Notes under the pieces: generated by a model
Database searches by the model: none
The model's input: only the letters and a program-made list of their open reading frames with translations
What the model was told of the DNA's origin: nothing
Part shown: positions 13,535 to 22,495 of the stretch, piece by piece
Position numbering within the stretch: position 1 is the first letter of the stretch
Layout of the letters: the number at the start of each line of letters is the position of its first letter
Position numbers and translations under genes: made by a program
Assembly (NCBI GenBank): GCA_002104945.1
Contig: MCFH01000010.1
Span: 1-64,000 of the forward strand
DNA: 64,000 bases
Direction: 5' to 3'
Source of the DNA: Piromyces finnis finn
Lineage: Eukaryota > Fungi > Neocallimastigomycota

Positions 13535-16500
13535 TTATTCTTCCTTAGTTTCATTTTCCTTGGTTGGTTTGTATTTTTTGAAAATTTGTATTTTTCTATT
13601 TTGGTATTTCATTTTTTTTTTAAAAGCTAAAAATTCAGTCACCTCAGATACATTAGCGATAGCTTTTTCAGAATCAGGGATAGTCATAATATCTGGAATG
13701 GTCATGTTACTTATATCTCTTTTCAATGCTCTTTCTTTAATACTATCATTGGTTCTAACAAATGGTAAATAATAAGATAAAGTATAGATAATGGTGGCAA
13801 TTCTACAAAAGTTAGTGGAAAGGATTTGATAAAATATTGGAAATACAACGCAAACTTCAAAAGGTAATTTAATTTTTGGGTTATTTCTTGCGATGATTAA
13901 ATTAAAGATATCTAAGCTAATGAGTGAAATGGCAATGCAAATGCAAACAATCATTAGTGCTGGTAAATAAGAATGCATTAAAAACATAAATACTAATAGC
14001 ACAAGAAAGGCGTAATCGTTTAAGATGGAAATAATAAAATCAAAACAAAATAATTTAGCTGTAAGAGTAGCTCGATGATTCCAACGACATTTATGGAGCA
14101 AACAATAAAGGAATTTAAAAAGAAAACGATGACGTGCTGGTTCCCAATAAGCAACACGTTGACGTGACAATGAATATTGACCACAATCGCAATCTTTCAT
14201 ATTTTCTCCTAGAAAATGTGGAAGATATTCTTTTAAGTGGAAATAGCATCTTGGTACAAGAGTATCTATGATAACATGTGCTATTTCAATTTTATAATTA
14301 CCATCATGTAATTCATTTGGATCACAAAATTGAGGTTTACCATACATGGTATGAAGACGAAGACCAAGTTGTAAATCATCTCCACGGAAAACTGTATCAT
14401 GACGATAAAGACACTCCAATAGGAATGGGGTACTCCAAGTACTCATAGCCCCACTTGGGAATACTACTGTACCAATATCCTTATGTACCTTTTTACTGTA
14501 CATTGAAATAATATATTCAAGATTTTGAAATGCTGAAACTATACCTTCACGACGATTACTTGCAATAATAGGATAGGCTAATGCTTTTACATTTTGATCC
14601 TTTTTAAAGTAGGATAAAATTTCTTCTTCAACCCAATTTTCCGGAATTAATACATCATCATCGATAATTGAAATGTACTTGATATCAATACCCGACCAAA
14701 ACAAATTATTTATTAGACAAAATTGAGCTAAAGTTTTAGAACCTTCATTTAAATTTGCATAAATAATATTTAATCCACAATAATTAGGATGTGTACATCT
14801 AAAGTGATGACTATAACGATCTACAATTTCCTTCATTTTTTGTTTTTCACTTGGAGAGGAACCATTTTCAGCTATGAAAATTGACATTGGCGTAGTAATT
14901 TTCAATAAATTTTCTAAAGTTGCTGGCAACACATCTGAACTATTATGACATACAATAAGAAAAGCATGATTAATACTTTTATACATGGATACAATTTTAG
15001 ATTGTTTATCAGAATAAGAAAAAGCGTTTTTTCTTCTGATATACTCTTTTTGAAATGATATGTTTTCACCATAATTTTTACAACTGAGTTTTTCGTTTAT
15101 TGAATTAGATGCCTCTGATATATCATCCACGTCAGAATGATTGGATTTATTTTTATTTCCATGAACAATGTCAATTTCTATGACATTTCCTATTTCTTCA
15201 TTTGGTATTCCGTCGTTACCCAAATTAATGTTGATGAATGAATTATTTGTGTCTGTGCTATTATGTTTGTTATAGTTAATACCCTTATCCCCATTCGAAT
15301 CCCTATCATGAGTGGAATAGTTATTGGCACTATCTGAATTATTATTGAAAATGATTGTATTATTGGATGCACTACTATTGTCATAAGTATCACTATATAG
15401 GGTAAAACCATCGTCTTCTTCATCATTAATAATGGTTGATGAACTATCCATTTCATTATAAATAGCTAATGATTTCTTATTAAGAGAAGGCCATTTTACA
15501 AAAGGTGCGCCTAATAAAATCATAAAACTTTCTCTATTAAGTAAAAGCCAACATATAATATTAAAGGTTATAAAGGGTATGCTGAAAGTTGCATAATTAT
15601 TAATGATATAATTATATATTTTTCGACAGAGAACTTTGTAATAACTAAACTTTAGATTGGATCCAATTAAAAAATAGGATATTATAATCATGATCACAAG
15701 TTCAAATAAAGCAACCAACCAAAGCTTGAAAAAAGTAAAAGGAAAAAGTCTTGTTTTTTTATTGGAAAAAAAGTACCAAACAAAAGGATTAATGAAAACA
15801 CCGTATAAAAGATGAATAAAGATGATTATGAATGATATTAAGAAAGCATTTGTAAAAATAGAGTAGATACTGAATAAATTAATATTACGATTAGATTTAA
15901 TAATTTCATCTCGCCTTTTTTTAATAAATATTTTCAAAGAGGCATAATCCTTTTCTATATTTGACATTTTATTTATTTGATTATTATTCTTATCAAGGAT
16001 AGGTTCCAGTGAACCGTCCCATTTTAAATCTGCATGAACCATATTGAAAATACTATCCATTCTATCTAAAAATAAGGTAGTTCCAAAAAAATTATTTACT
16101 ATATAATTTATATAATCTCTAGTGTTATGTTTTTCACTTGAATAATTCATTAAATTATCAAATATTGGTCTTCTCGTATCTTGTTTTCCTTTTCCTATAA
16201 AACGAAATTCCTCAAATTCTGTATAGGTATAATTTTTACTCCAATCATTTAATGGTGAAGAAAAATATCCTTCATGATAATTCCATTGGTTTTTTGTCTA
16301 TCGAGTTAAGAAAAAAAAATTTTAAATATTAATTGGTATGTTATCTTTTTTTTTTTTTTAAATAATAACCATTTTATATCTATCTATCTATATATACTAT
16401 ATATAATATTTCATAAAAGATATAACTACTTACTTTATCATAATATAAAAAATAATTGGTTCCATTATATAAATAGCCATGCTGATTATTTAAAATGTAA

Positions 16501-17699
16501 TCTATAGTCATTATTTTTAAAAATGAATCATAATTAAAGTTTTTTTTTAATTGGTCCAAGGAATTAAAATTTTCAGTCATATAGAATAATTTAGCAAGAT
16601 CATTTTTGGAATGAAAAGTTTCAGGAGATTCAATTCCTTGATACCAATAATTTGCATAACTATCTATATTTTCATTAATTAACAGTTTTGGGAATGTTTC
16701 AATTAAATCAAATTCACCATTGTATTTCATTGGAGAAAAGTGACTATTCATTTGGCCATACATTTCAGTAGTGTTAAATTCATTTTTAAAATAATCAATA
16801 TTTGGATTTTCTTTGATTAAATAAAAACCTATAGGGTTATTATTAAAATAAACTCTGGTAAATCCCACTTGAGCAGATGGTACATCCATAACATTACAGA
16901 TATCGGTATACATTTTATGACGAAGCATAAGATTATCAGAAGAAGTAGATACTAATTGAATACTAGTTTTATTAAACAGATTATAATATAATTTATCTGT
17001 GGGAGATGTTTGTGGTTGGGTTAAACTGTACTCTTTATAGGAGAGAAAATAAGAAGTTTTTTTAGGGTTATGATTCTTTTGAAAATAATATTTATTGGAA
17101 TAGTAGGTAGTAAAATAAATATCGGTATTTATATTATCTGCCAATGCATTTATTTCCAATAATAAATTTTCAAACTTTCCCACCGAATATGGAGTAATAA
17201 TAGTAGCACTTACGTTTAATGATGGACTATTTTGTGAATTGGTGTAATGAGCATTTTCTAAATCCTTATAGCCGGAAATGTCACCATTTAAATAAATTGT
17301 TGATATAAAATTATCAGAAAACAATTCTGAATACTTGTTTTGATTTCTGGTTATTTGGTTTCCTACTACCGTAGAAAGATCTGGATGATTATAAATTGAA
17401 TCATTTCTATTGAAAAATTCATTTAACGGTTGGTTAGAATTCATATTCGATGGTTGAGCCAATCTTTTAAAATTTTCTTCTTTTATGATTTTATTTTTAT
17501 CAGTGATACTATAAGAAACATAACTATATGTTTCCTTTTTATCTAATTCATATTCTCCTCTCCAAATAGGATAATCTGTATCATCTAAATCTACTATTTT
17601 ATTATTAATTTTCAGACCTACTTTTGTTGTATTTCTATTCACCGGGAACACTACACTAAATTGATGAACCTCTAATTTTTTATATAACAAATATAACAT
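13535..17699 (-). CDS. CotH-like (pseudo)kinase domain fused to a multi-pass family 2 glycosyltransferase, about 1340 aa, exons 17699..16434 and 16297..13535
   Basis: A phase-0 intron at 16433..16298 (GTAAGT donor, TAG acceptor) joins NYFLYYDK to TKNQWNYHEGYF. The CotH C-lobe (RRPIFDNL...FLDRMDSIFNMVHADLKWDGSL...LKIFIKKR) is in the same open frame as 3 TM helices and the GT2 motifs (CHNSSDVL, AENG, IIDDDVL, FQNLEY, SGA, GDDLQLG, RQRVAYW), followed by more TM helices. The true 5' end and signal-peptide exon were not found. Confidence 0.82.
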
Positions 17700-18688
17700 T
17701 TATATAAATATGTTATAATGTTATAAGTCAATAGGTAAAAATATATTATAAATGTATATTATTATTATGATATTATGATACATGATTATTAATAACAAAA
17801 TTTTACAGCTAAAAAAATTATAATTATAATATAAATAAAAATTAAAGAATATATATATATATTCTTTAAATACTAACTTGAATAAGCATTTGTGAAAAGA
17901 ATTATTAATTCAAATAAATAAGTAACCCTATATATAAAATTCTTCTTTTTCAACATTTTTATTTTACTAATAATAATAATGTATATAAAGACTATTAAGT
18001 AAGTATATCAAGTATATTATTATTTAGTGTTAATACTATAAAGTATTGCTATTTTTGAATAAATAAAAAAAAACAAAAACACTTGATAAACCTTTTTATT
18101 TTTCTTTATTTTTTATATGGGATTTTCAACCAATAAACCTTGAGAAATAAATAAATAAATATTTATTTTATTTTATTTAAATCATCCATTGAATAATTAT
18201 TCCTATTTAAATGAATTTAAATGGGTATTTAAATATATAAAAAATATTAAAATTAAAAATAAATTAAATTTATGAATTTTTTTTTTTAATACCAAAAAAA
18301 TATTTTTTAATAGTAATACTAATGATATTATTTAATATTAAGCAAAAATAAAAGGTAATACTATTTTAATAAGAAATATCATATTTTACTATTTTATATT
18401 CATTCTTTTAATATTACAATTTTATTTTACTTTTTTTTAAAAAAAGCTTTTTTTTTCCTTATTGAATAATCTTCTATTTTTTGATAGCAAACTTTTGGGT
18501 TACTTGACCAATCAAACAAAAAAAAAAATTTAATATTCCTTCTTTTGTATTTTTATAACTCTTGGTGTATTTTTTTTTTTTCTTTTTGGATGCTTTTATT
18601 TCATTTATAAATATATTTTTATATTGACGCTCTTTAACATCGTTTTATACTTTTAATATTTTTTTTTTAAAAAAAATCTTATTTAAAG

Positions 18689-19883: not shown

Positions 19884-22495
19884 AATAATTGTATTTTTTA
19901 TATAAATTTTTATTTTAATTTAATAATAGAAAACTTGAAAATAATGAATTATCAGCTATTTCAGAAGAAATTAAAAATATTAGAAATAAAAAACAATTGT
20001 AAGAGTTATTAAAATATATTTAAATATGGTTATAAAAGTTAAAATAATAAATAATTCTTTATTTAACTTTTTTTTTCATAAAGAGTTTTAGATAACAAAT
20101 CGATTGTTGAATCCTCAATTACACATAATGAAACTGATTTTATGTAAGTTAATTTAAAATAAAATTATTAAAATGGTTTTAATTAAAAAAAAATATTGAT
20201 ATCACTATGAAAGTTAACTAATATAGAATGAATCAATTTATTTATTAATAATATTAAAAAAATTTTAACAGGTCCTATAAAATAACTAGTTTGGTTAGAA
20301 AAAAAAATTTATCATTTTATAAGGATGAAGGCGTCTCTTATATTGCCAAAACTAATGGTAGATATCTTTCAGTATATGACGGCTCTACTTTCAAAGATAT
20401 TTATATTCAAGGTGTAAATATTGGATTAGGTTTACCAAATTATTTTCCCGAAGAAACTGGAATTGCTTATGATCAATATTATGATTGGTTTAATAAAATT
20501 GCGGAAATGAATGCTAATTCCATTAGAGTTTATACCATACAATCACCTGAGTTCTATAAAGCCTTTTATAATTATAATAAAAACAATAAGCATAAACCAA
20601 TCTATTTATTTCAGGGTACATGGTATAATGAAGATCGTTGGTTAGAAACTCAAAATGCATTTGATTCAGAGCTACTTTCTAATCTTTATCAAGACACAAG
20701 AGACTTAATAGATATAATCCATGGAAATTCAATTTTACCGAAATTGCCAGGAAGAGCATCAGGTATATATTCATTTGATATATCTCCTTGGTGTATTGGT
20801 TGGATTTTAGGTGTTGAATCGAGTAAACAATTTGTAAATACGACAAATATTTGTAATCCAGATAAAACTCATTATAAAGGGGAATACATTTCAGCCAATA
20901 ATATACAGCCTTTTGAAGTTTTCTGGGCCATGACTGCTGATTATACAGTTTCCTACGAAATGACGAATTATAAAACTCAAAGACCTATTAGTTTCTCCAA
21001 TTGGCTTACAGCCGATGTCATGCGACATCCTAGTGAAACAATGGAAGATGAAGATACCGTTACACTAGATATTCAACGACTTACCCAAGAAGATGCCTTT
21101 AAATGTGGATTTTTCGCTTCTTATCATGTTTATCCGTATTATCCAAATTTTATGTGGACACAAAAAAATTATATTGAACATAAAAATGATGATGGCAAAA
21201 TAGACCCGTACGAAGCGTATTTACAAGATTTGAAATCAGTTCATTTCGATAACATTCCCCTTCTTGTAGCAGAATTTGGAATACCATCTTCTCGTGGAAT
21301 AACCCATCAAAATCCTATTACCGGTTATAATCAAGGAAAAGTTGATGAAAAAACACAAGGACATATGCTTGTTGAAATGGCAAAAAGTATTAAAGCTAAT
21401 AATTACACTGGTTGTTTAATTTTTTCATGGCAAGATGAATGGTTTAAGCGTACTTGGAATACTATGGATAATACAAATGAAACCAGAAGAGCGTATTGGG
21501 ATGATGTTCAAACAAATGAACAAAACTTTGGTATACTTGATTTTGTTTCCTATACCGATGACCATAAGATTATGATACTCGATGGCAAAACAGATGACTG
21601 GACCTCCAATGATAAATTTACTGAAACAAGGAATATCAAGATGTCAGTTAAAAAGGATGCCGCCTATATTTATATTTTACTTGAAGCAAATACTATGGTT
21701 GATTTAACAAAGGATAGAGTATTGATATCTTTTGATGTTACTCCGAAGTCCGGTTCTCACATCTATACCTCCCATGATGGTAAAGATATTTTTAATTTTT
21801 CCGAAGCTGTTGATTTTGTGCTTGAATTAAACGGACGAAATGATACAGAAATATTTACCCATGAATATTATGACAAGTTTGTCTATTCCTATTATCAGTA
21901 TGAAGAAGTGAAAATCAAAGGATTAAAGCCTGCCACTTCACGTAAAAGTTCAGTGTTTAATTCGATTAAACTTTTAAATGAAATAGAACTTCTTCTTCCT
22001 GATAGAAATGAAACGATCAATACACTCTATGATATTACTGGTAAGCTTTTATTTGGAAGTACGGATAAAGCATCTCCAGATTATTCAACAATATCGGATT
22101 TCTATTTAACCCCATCTATTGCTGAAATAAGAATTGCATATGGTTTACTTAATTTTAGAGATCCATCATCTTTAGCAATTGAAGATGATTTCTATGCTCT
22201 TGATAAGAATGTTGATTTAGAAATAGATTCAATTAAAATAGGACTTACTGAAGGCAATAACACCATATTCAAAACCTTCTCATGGGATAAATGGGATACT
22301 GTTGCTTATCAAGAAAGGTTAAAAGATTCCTATTATATTTTACAAGGCTATTTTGCAGAAGAAGAAAATTCCAATCATTCCTATAAGAAAATTATAATAC
22401 TATCTATACTAATGATTATTATACTATTGTTATTATTCTTACTATTTTTTTTTTTCAAAAGAAAAAATATTATTAAAAAAAATATACAACCTTAA
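18689..22495 (+). CDS. Signal peptide - 6 LRR - putative TIM-barrel glycoside hydrolase (clan GH-A-like) - probable beta-sandwich - C-terminal TM; 9 exons, about 954 aa
   Basis: Exons 18689-18852, 18984-19055, 19187-19255, 19393-19461, 19585-19653, 19754-19822, 19930-19998, 20084-20143 and 20272-22495 all join with phase-2 GT-AG introns. The 69-72 nt exons each encode one LRR (e.g. LSNNPITELPEEIGNLKELRSL). The last exon has QGVNIG, MNANSIRVYT, WILGVES, SYHVYPYYP, VAEFGIPSSRG, FSWQDEWFK, then LDGKTDDW and a hydrophobic TM followed by KRK. Confidence 0.82.

Follow-up and report, generated by a model that had tools for sequence, protein, structure and literature searches.

A 64-kb stretch of the Piromyces finnis genome (contig MCFH01000010.1, positions 1 to 64,000; hereafter the window, meaning this whole stretch) contains two open reading frames (ORFs) on the minus strand, at 16380-17699 and 13535-16150, which on sequence evidence are one three-exon gene for a predicted membrane protein of 1359 amino acids (aa). 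The spliced product consists of a signal peptide, a CotH-like ectodomain, three transmembrane (TM) helices, a low-complexity linker, a family-2 glycosyltransferase (GT2) domain, and C-terminal TM helices. Taken as a whole, we consider it rather probable that this one gene places an outward-facing, non-catalytic CotH module on a membrane polymer synthase. The window is 22.6% G+C overall, and ~10% between genes.

Gene structure and the splice at intron 2

The two ORFs are separated by intron 2, a phase-0 intron that falls within the CotH domain (Table 1). An earlier note on this DNA had proposed a single gene joined through a phase-0 intron at 16433..16298, and these coordinates proved exact, with the public P. 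finnis model BCR36DRAFT_347596 (P0001), named "hypothetical protein", joining YYDK/TKNQW through the identical splice. On the minus strand, the junction reads ...TAT GAT AAA / GTAAGT ... TCGATAG / ACA AAA AAC CAA TGG, where exon 2 ends at a codon boundary (16434) and exon 3 continues from 16297 in the frame of the GT2 ORF, with no intervening stop. Without splicing, the CotH ORF hits a stop 18 codons inside the intron, and the first ATG of the downstream ORF (16150) falls within the CotH C-lobe. In a six-frame profile scan of the window, a profile of the orthologous ectodomains had its positions 2-395 matched in the exon-2 ORF and 392-537 in the exon-3 ORF; since the match ends at 395 in one ORF and resumes at 392 in the other, the domain is split at intron 2. 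The claim that CotH sequence continues into the GT2 frame is thus borne out, as the domain spans the junction. In three orthologues derived from complementary DNA (cDNA; P0002, P0003, and P0012), the Pfam CotH domain is uninterrupted over profile positions 12-321/322, scoring 39-59 bits.

The same arrangement is found at other gut-fungal loci. A GT...AG intron lies at the same codon in both Anaeromyces robustus copies (L007 and L012) and in Neocallimastix californiae (L009/L010), while in L011, the second P. finnis copy, an AG acceptor marks the identical exon-3 start. At each of these loci (L007, L009/L010, L011, and L012), the GT2 part is preceded on its own strand by a full ectodomain. Where other gut-fungal contigs had gene calls of the prokaryotic style, every call terminated at ...YFLYYD, which is the intron-2 site. 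Contigs of 4.3-4.4 kb from three metatranscriptome samples, with short untranslated regions and in one case a poly(A) end, carry a single 1434-aa ORF comprising CotH and GT2, and a fourth metatranscriptome contig encodes a 1548-aa relative, again with both parts in a single ORF (contigs L001-L004 altogether). A further contig (L005; 12.9 kb, 19% G+C) contains an intronless 1397-aa ORF, P0061, whose CotH match is stronger (95 bits) and whose GT2 domain belongs to the same family. RNA-labelled runs contain 64-90% of the sampled words of the stretch, which approaches the 92% made up by exons, a comparison that is suggestive only.

Two separate genes, one for a truncated secreted CotH protein and one for a GT2 protein starting from the ATG at 16150, would account for the separate ATG of each ORF and for the gene callers that report the CotH part alone on other contigs. 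Such an arrangement would cut the CotH domain midway, and against it stand the GT...AG intron at the same codon in other loci and the cDNA-like contigs and intronless paralogue that read through both parts; we regard it as extremely improbable.

Exon 1, which supplies the start codon and signal peptide, and intron 1 are additions to the earlier two-ORF view. Hydrophobic leaders similar to exon 1 open the cDNA-derived orthologues P0003 and P0012. Apart from seven substitutions and a two-residue gap, the window product differs from P0001 in the linker, where an additional intron in the public model removes 47 residues (823-869; window 15008-15148, minus strand) that the window reads through. This additional intron is probably wrong, because the removed stretch (SEKLS..NY.E...KN.PSYTD.Q) is conserved in orthologues.

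Other public models are affected at the ectodomain. For the second P. finnis copy, the model BCR36DRAFT_440018 (P0006) comprises 763 aa and GT2 alone, yet a full CotH ectodomain is encoded upstream of it on the same strand, at L011 8203-10036 (plus), and the position of the intron is the same. Judged by its locus sequence, P0006 is truncated, and likewise A. robustus P0007 (L012) and N. californiae P0004 (L009). The earlier note knew of no CotH-GT2 architecture. Literature searches combining CotH with GT2, glycosyltransferase, or synthase found no paper describing such a fusion; the architecture is, however, already present in public gene models from Piromyces, Anaeromyces, and Neocallimastix, which are labelled "hypothetical protein" and carry both Pfam domains.

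The GT2 domain, its family and its fold

Pfam assigns Glyco_tranf_2_3 (PF13641) to the GT2 part. A GT2 profile search over 1.84 billion representatives matched 443 proteins at E ≤0.001, which marks this as a small, distinct GT2 family rather than mainstream GT2. Its named members come from the chytrids Caulochytrium, Powellomyces, Rhizophlyctis, and Gaertneriomyces, from Capsaspora, from the ichthyosporeans Chromosphaera and Sphaeroforma, and from Barthelona. All are annotated as hypothetical, and no member from Dikarya occurs among the named hits.

The family shares the motifs (D/E)NGS, G(N/S)KT, DDD, QxxEY, SGA, G(E/D)DLQ, and QRx(R/K)(S/G)W, and the columns invariant in 90 members include N917, K960, D985, D987, D1080, Q1152, R1153, and W1157. 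The DxD motif is present as IDDDV (residues 984-988), with D985 and D987 invariant in those 90 members, and the catalytic-base motif as RGDDLQ (residues 1077-1082), for which the family consensus is G-E/D-D-L-Q with an invariant second D. The QRx(R/K)(S/G)W motif of the family is one residue longer than the canonical Q(Q/R)xRW, with Q, R, and W invariant. In the window it reads QRVAYW (residues 1152-1157), and in the window's clade QR[VI][AV][YF]W. The earlier note had described a processive-synthase-like GT2 with RQRVAYW as a QxxRW variant. The fold and most of the motifs (DDD and GDD) agree with that description, which changes at the last motif: RQRVAYW is derived from QRxRSW, and the Arg beside the Trp has been lost. 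In the gut-fungal clade this motif has changed though the remaining GT2 domain is ~80% conserved (mean column identity across gut-fungal genera, 80%), and the CotH catalytic aspartates discussed below have been lost too. The P0061 type retains QRIRSW as well as the first CotH aspartate.

Searches of the Protein Data Bank (PDB) by sequence, using single sequences and profiles of 7 and 90 sequences, found no relative of either domain. Structure prediction, proposed in the earlier note as a check, gave a confident AlphaFold2 (AF2) model of residues 575-1359, with a predicted local distance difference test (pLDDT) score of 83.9 and a predicted template-modelling (pTM) score of 0.83; its best matches are hyaluronan synthase (HAS), BcsA, and Chs1. 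Foldseek ranked hyaluronan synthases first, followed by chitin synthases and BcsA. VIA-align gave Z scores of 17.7 for CvHAS (375 residues, 3.3 Å), 17.5 for PcManGT, 17.1 for BcsA, 16.6 for XlHAS1, and 15.2 for Chs1. In the predicted model these alignments take in the TM and interface helices, covering model residues 106-710 against CvHAS and 3-709 against BcsA, and residue 680 onward aligns to CvHAS starting at its residue 38. The best reviewed-protein (Swiss-Prot) models were IcaA, HasA, NodC, and HAS2, with TM-scores by hit of 0.56-0.69, and the AFDB clusters held unnamed relatives only. The only NCBIfam hint was PgaC_IcaA, at 17 bits against a cutoff of 422. The fungal chitin-synthase profiles PF01644 and PF03142 had no Pfam match at E 0.1, and QRVAYW stands in place of QRRRW.

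Based on the predicted model, the GT2 half is best described as a membrane-embedded family-2 glycosyltransferase of the hyaluronan/chitin/cellulose-synthase type, which would make a polymer processively. A non-processive enzyme that adds a single sugar to a lipid, protein, or primer, with the CotH domain in an unrelated lumenal role, is quite unlikely in our estimation. It draws on the high Z score of PcManGT, a minimal GT2 linked to N-glycan synthesis, on the loss of the Arg of the QxxRW-type motif in the window's clade, and on the failure of the solved synthases to match at the sequence level. What speaks for a processive synthase instead is that the HAS and BcsA matches extend over TM and interface helices besides the GT-A core, that the family retains Q-R...W, G(E/D)D, and DDD, and that the bacterial relatives are found in exopolysaccharide-type operons with canonical QRxRW.

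The CotH ectodomain, topology and origin of the fusion

Known CotH proteins include bacterial spore-coat kinases, invasins of Mucorales, and components of cellulosomes. Exon 2 alone matches Pfam CotH (PF08757) above the gathering cutoff of 23.8 bits (Table 1). By language-model features, which offer a lead rather than an alignment, the whole 550-aa ectodomain is nearest to Mucoromycota CotH clusters (score 0.96; 201-204 of 256 features shared). No fungal dockerin (CBM10) was found beside CotH, as Pfam gives only CotH and GT2 families for the window pieces and the orthologues.

To locate the catalytic residues, P0061 served as a bridge between the window and the Bacillus kinases. P0061 aligned to Bacillus cereus CotH (PDB 5JD9) by phmmer (E 4e-6), and the orthologue profile aligned to P0061 by hhalign with a probability of 99.8% (E 1.6e-28); MAFFT blocks were also used in mapping the sites. 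In 5JD9, D224 (QNFD) and D247 (PWD) are 23 residues apart, equal to the spacing of D228 and D251 in Bacillus subtilis CotH, where the mutants D228Q and D251A are inactive (PMC7821199). At the site of the catalytic aspartate (D228/D224), the window has His424, and 13 clade members have H, Y, or N. At the site of the metal-binding aspartate (D251/D247), the window has Tyr450, with Tyr in 8 of the 8 clade sequences that cover the column; five exon-2 fragments of the clade end before it. P0061 itself has Asp at the first site and Glu at the second, and three stand-alone gut-fungal CotH genes have Asp at both. Because both aspartates that are essential in Bacillus CotH are replaced, the window ectodomain is probably a pseudokinase without kinase activity. 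The earlier note had read this part as a kinase-fold ectodomain, a reading that probably loses its catalytic content here.

An ectodomain that is still an enzyme, acting as a kinase or other phosphotransferase through non-canonical residues such as the invariant D417/N421-N422 and H447/E448 to modify the emerging glycan or wall proteins, at the surface or within the secretory pathway, is an unlikely alternative. Many residues around the former active site are invariant (NNxxxYLYN..NYFLY, WN[YF]HEGY), Pfam assigns CotH, and P0061 and the stand-alone neighbouring CotH genes retain the catalytic Asp. Set against this, both of the aspartates whose mutation kills B. subtilis CotH are replaced, the variation at the first site between H, Y, and N is unexpected for a catalytic residue, and adenosine triphosphate may not be available at the outer face or lumenal side of the protein.

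Hydropathy and the AF2 model place three helices between CotH and GT2 (residues 580-608, 628-651, and 679-702) and three long helices after GT2. The signal peptide and the three crossings would leave CotH outside and the GT2 domain in the cytosol, as had been proposed, and the three helices N-terminal of GT2 match the N-terminal helices of hyaluronan and cellulose synthases. The linker that follows them (residues ~703-868) differs in sequence and length among orthologues. This three-TM module is collinear with residues 26-170 of the Caulochytrium homologue, which begins directly with the module and has no ectodomain. The position of the module at the extreme N-terminus suggests that the N-terminus of the ancestral synthase already faced outward, and that gut fungi added the leader and CotH. 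Chytrid relatives lack an ectodomain. In Capsaspora and Chromosphaera, the corresponding position is taken by a signal peptide and an ectodomain of 750-900 aa. When the N-termini of the chytrid and holozoan proteins were searched for a CotH domain that might be hidden there, hhalign probabilities stayed below 3% and Pfam gave no match.

Of the phylogenies of each domain that the earlier note had called for, a tree was built for the GT2 domain, and it places the CotH-bearing lineages in two subfamilies. In the maximum-likelihood tree of 57 GT2 domains, a quick search in which P0061 has a long branch, the window's clade (11 rows, support 100) has as its sister group a clade of chytrid proteins that lack CotH (support 96), and the GT2 domain of P0061 groups with Gaertneriomyces and Sphaeroforma in another subfamily. 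An approximately unbiased (AU) test, run with the tree already known, rejects the grouping of all CotH-bearing GT2 domains into one clade (log-likelihood difference 80, p 3.9e-6). This leaves two routes, a double attachment of CotH or a transfer of the ectodomain from one paralogue to another. Full-length stand-alone CotH genes that keep both catalytic aspartates adjoin the CotH-GT2 genes at L005 1945-3849 (minus strand), L009 4349-5698 (plus), and L011 5338-6726 (minus). These neighbours (L005, L009/L010, and L011) are a plausible source of the ectodomain and may also be a sign of linked function. The stand-alone CotH of L005 gave no match to 5JD9 in the PDB sequence search, and the 64-kb window has no full-length stand-alone CotH gene with both aspartates.

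Putting these parts together, we propose that the GT2 domain would take a nucleotide sugar from the cytosol, elongate a polymer, and export it through a channel formed by its own TM helices. The ancestral synthase would have begun with the three TM helices, its N-terminus directed outward, and gut fungi would then have added a signal peptide and a full fungal-type CotH domain at this end. CotH would thereby sit on the outer face, beside the expected exit of the polymer, where, as a module without catalysis of its own, it may bind the nascent polymer or guide it, or may tie the synthase to a partner in the wall. In Mucor, loss of cotH4 changes spore-wall chitin (PMC9973265), and in streptococci and clostridia, pel operons have cotH-like genes directly beside them (PMC7112168); by analogy, both point toward a link between CotH and polysaccharides.

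Several points weigh against this proposal. The evidence for the intron-2 splice consists of comparison, the public model, and RNA-labelled runs with 64-90% of the sampled words. The window's clade lacks the Arg before the Trp that canonical synthases use, the minimal non-processive GT2 PcManGT almost equals the synthases in Z score, and the polymer-synthase role suggested for the whole GT2 family comes from sequence and fold rather than biochemistry. For the ectodomain, the mapping of catalytic residues passes through a single bridging sequence, P0061, and the AF2 model, built from 7 sequences, is poor (pLDDT 43), with the seat over the channel a conjecture. Finally, the three long helices after GT2 and a basic tail that is expected to be cytosolic give crossings that do not tally.

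The ectodomain could instead be a receptor that, on binding a ligand from outside (plant wall material, a host glycan, or a partner protein, for example), would turn the synthase on or off by way of the TM helices; the earlier note had raised this idea as a possible coupling of an extracellular cue to glycan synthesis. Pseudokinase domains are often binding or regulatory modules, and here the ectodomain leads straight into TM1, the first helix of the ancestral three-helix module. The binding of host GRP78 by CotH proteins of Mucorales (PMC9973265) would fit the same reading. Ligand binding and allostery would be conjecture for this protein. Holozoan relatives have a hydrolase-like domain in this place, which points to processing of the polymer and away from sensing, and a receptor is distinctly improbable to us.

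Returning to a non-catalytic CotH module on a polymer synthase, a broader and more tentative idea, which we hold to be possible but doubtful, is that fungal CotH domains are outer-face partners of cell-surface polysaccharide synthases, belonging to a set of exchangeable extracellular processing domains that act on the polymer. The occurrence of CotH on two subfamilies, the stand-alone CotH genes adjoining synthases, and the holozoan hydrolase-like domain at the same place all argue for it. A conserved and possibly repeated CotH-synthase fusion would be a concrete link of CotH to cell-surface glycan synthesis, one that fits the Mucor cotH4 chitin phenotype. If this is true, the fusions would act as a Rosetta stone for the native role of CotH, that of the Mucorales invasins included, and would reveal a modular system made of a synthase and an exchangeable extracellular processing domain. 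With CotH, a hydrolase-like domain, or nothing at the same position in different lineages, the family amounts to a natural experiment in linking a synthase to the handling of its product outside the cell. This uncharacterised eukaryotic GT2 family may make a wall or coat polymer. The wall of anaerobic fungi is relevant to rumen biology and biomass conversion, and a fungus-specific synthase would be a possible target or marker.

Table 1. Features of the CotH-GT2 gene and its head-to-head neighbour, in window coordinates (a slash marks a splice junction).
Feature	Position	Strand	Evidence
Exon 1: start codon and signal peptide MLKKKNFIYRVTYLFELIILFTNAYS, 79 nucleotides, phase 1 at end	17878..17956	-	Sequence; same exon in public model P0001
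Intron 1: GTTAGT...TTAG, 206 nucleotides	17672..17877	-	Sequence; splice yields ...YSK/VHQF... as in P0001
Exon 2: beta-rich N-terminal ectodomain and CotH N-lobe, to ...NYFLYYDK	16434..17671	-	Pfam CotH 39.9 bits, profile 12-199/322
His424 codon, aligned to catalytic Asp of Bacillus CotH (B. subtilis D228)	16479..16481	-	Alignment chain via P0061, MAFFT blocks
Intron 2: GTAAGT...TAG, 136 nucleotides, phase 0, within CotH domain	16298..16433	-	Sequence and split of orthologue profile
Exon 3 start: CotH C-lobe and helical tail, residues 440-579	15878..16297	-	Orthologue profile 392-537; Pfam CotH in P0002, P0003, P0012
Tyr450 codon, aligned to metal-binding Asp of Bacillus CotH (B. subtilis D251)	16265..16267	-	Alignment chain via P0061, MAFFT blocks
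Three predicted N-terminal TM helices (residues 580-608, 628-651, 679-702), amphipathic helix between TM2 and TM3	15509..15877	-	Hydropathy; AF2 helices, pLDDT 75-97
Asn/Ser/Asp-rich low-complexity linker, predicted cytosolic, residues ~703-868	15011..15508	-	pLDDT <50
GT2 (GT-A) catalytic domain and interface helices, residues 869-1174	14093..15010	-	Pfam PF13641 E 1.1e-11; AF2 pLDDT >90; invariant columns; fold matches
GT2 motifs: HNSS, ENGS, GSKT, DDD, QNLEY, GDD, QRVAYW	DDD 14662-14654; GDD 14383-14375; QRVAYW 14161-14144	-	
Three long predicted C-terminal membrane helices, residues 1181-1212, 1216-1241, 1252-1285; RATLTAK opens the first	13760..14074	-	Hydropathy, AF2; align with C-terminal helices of CvHAS/BcsA
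Lys/Arg-rich C-terminal tail, long amphipathic helix, then stop codon	13535..13759	-	Sequence, AF2
Neighbour gene, head-to-head: 734-aa ORF, ~700-aa extracellular domain, C-terminal TM anchor	20291..22495	+	BLASTP, alignment

Neighbouring genes and known systems

The gene that lies head-to-head with the CotH-GT2 gene encodes a protein with no Pfam, NCBIfam, or PDB match. Over ~700 residues it aligns with the ectodomains of the Capsaspora and Chromosphaera synthases (BLASTP E 6e-77 and 1e-70; 26% identity), and over its whole length it shares up to 47% identity with proteins of rumen Lachnospiraceae and many other Bacillota. The higher identity to Bacillota than to the holozoan homologues (47% vs 26%) suggests a bacterial origin for this gene. 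The 10 kb around the synthase hold no hydrolase-like gene of this kind in Anaeromyces, Neocallimastix, Powellomyces, L005, or the second copy of Piromyces, and since the head-to-head pairing is seen in this locus only, the adjacency could be chance. Elsewhere, a polysaccharide deacetylase gene (PF01522; L007 25002-25155, minus strand) starts ~10 kb downstream of an A. robustus orthologue and gives a weak hint of an N-acetylated product.

In bacteria, homologues of the neighbour protein occur together with a GT2 synthase. Of 80 bacterial loci, 57 have a GT2 protein of ~470 aa that matches the family profile (30-96 bits, canonical QRxRW) within 8 kb of the partner gene; in 52 loci it shares the strand of the partner, and in 29 it is adjacent to or overlaps the partner. 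One such operon (L049 11-11031, plus strand) comprises genes for an HD-GYP-like protein, a 1052-aa protein of no known family, a HEAT-repeat protein, the GT2 (470 aa, QRRRW), and a 739-aa partner. The Bacillaceae form of the partner makes up the C-terminal part of a ~1085-aa protein. Going by gene sizes, with the partner and GT2 genes equated with ydaM/ydaN, the bacterial operon may be of the B. subtilis ydaLMN type (PMC13274460).

Among known systems, class I hyaluronan synthases (CvHAS, PDB 8SNE and 7SP6; Xenopus HAS1, 8SMM) are the best structural match, with an alignment that begins at the last N-terminal TM helix, takes in the GT-A domain and interface helices, and extends into the C-terminal TM helices. 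Both have DxD, GDD-type, and Q...W motifs, and both hold a cytosolic catalytic domain between TM helices. Identity is only 12-15%, however, with no match at the sequence level, and unlike HAS the window protein is predicted to have its N-terminus outside, an extra TM helix, a 550-aa ectodomain, a 165-aa disordered linker, and QRVAYW in place of QxxRW. Chitin synthases (Saccharomyces cerevisiae Chs1, 8K3T; Phytophthora PsChs1, 7WJO; Candida Chs2, 7STM) share the membrane GT2 fold (Z 13.5-15.2), but the window protein has neither a Pfam chitin-synthase match nor QRRRW, and its N-terminal architecture is different. The best matches among reviewed models include IcaA/PgaC, the poly-N-acetylglucosamine synthase, along with streptococcal HasA and NodC, which are ~400 aa long and lack an ectodomain.

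On the CotH side, the Bacillus kinase (5JD9; B. subtilis CotH) shares PF08757 and can be aligned through P0061, but the window protein has His424 and Tyr450 for D228 and D251 and is tethered to a membrane synthase, whereas Bacillus CotH is a soluble coat protein. The Mucorales invasins CotH2/3 and Mucor CotH4 likewise have a signal peptide and face outward, and their clusters are the nearest by language-model features, again a lead and no alignment; unlike the window protein, they are stand-alone and partly anchored by glycosylphosphatidylinositol.

The bacterial and holozoan relatives connect the synthase with its neighbour. Bacillota operons pair a GT2 synthase with a ~700-aa homologue of the neighbour protein, though their GT2 is ~470 aa, has canonical QRxRW, and lacks CotH. 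Capsaspora CAOG_05310 and CAOG_06260 and the Chromosphaera protein have the same GT2 family and the same layout as the window protein, with a signal peptide, a large ectodomain, three TM helices, a linker, and GT2. Their ectodomain is not CotH, and is instead homologous to the product of the gene next door in the window.

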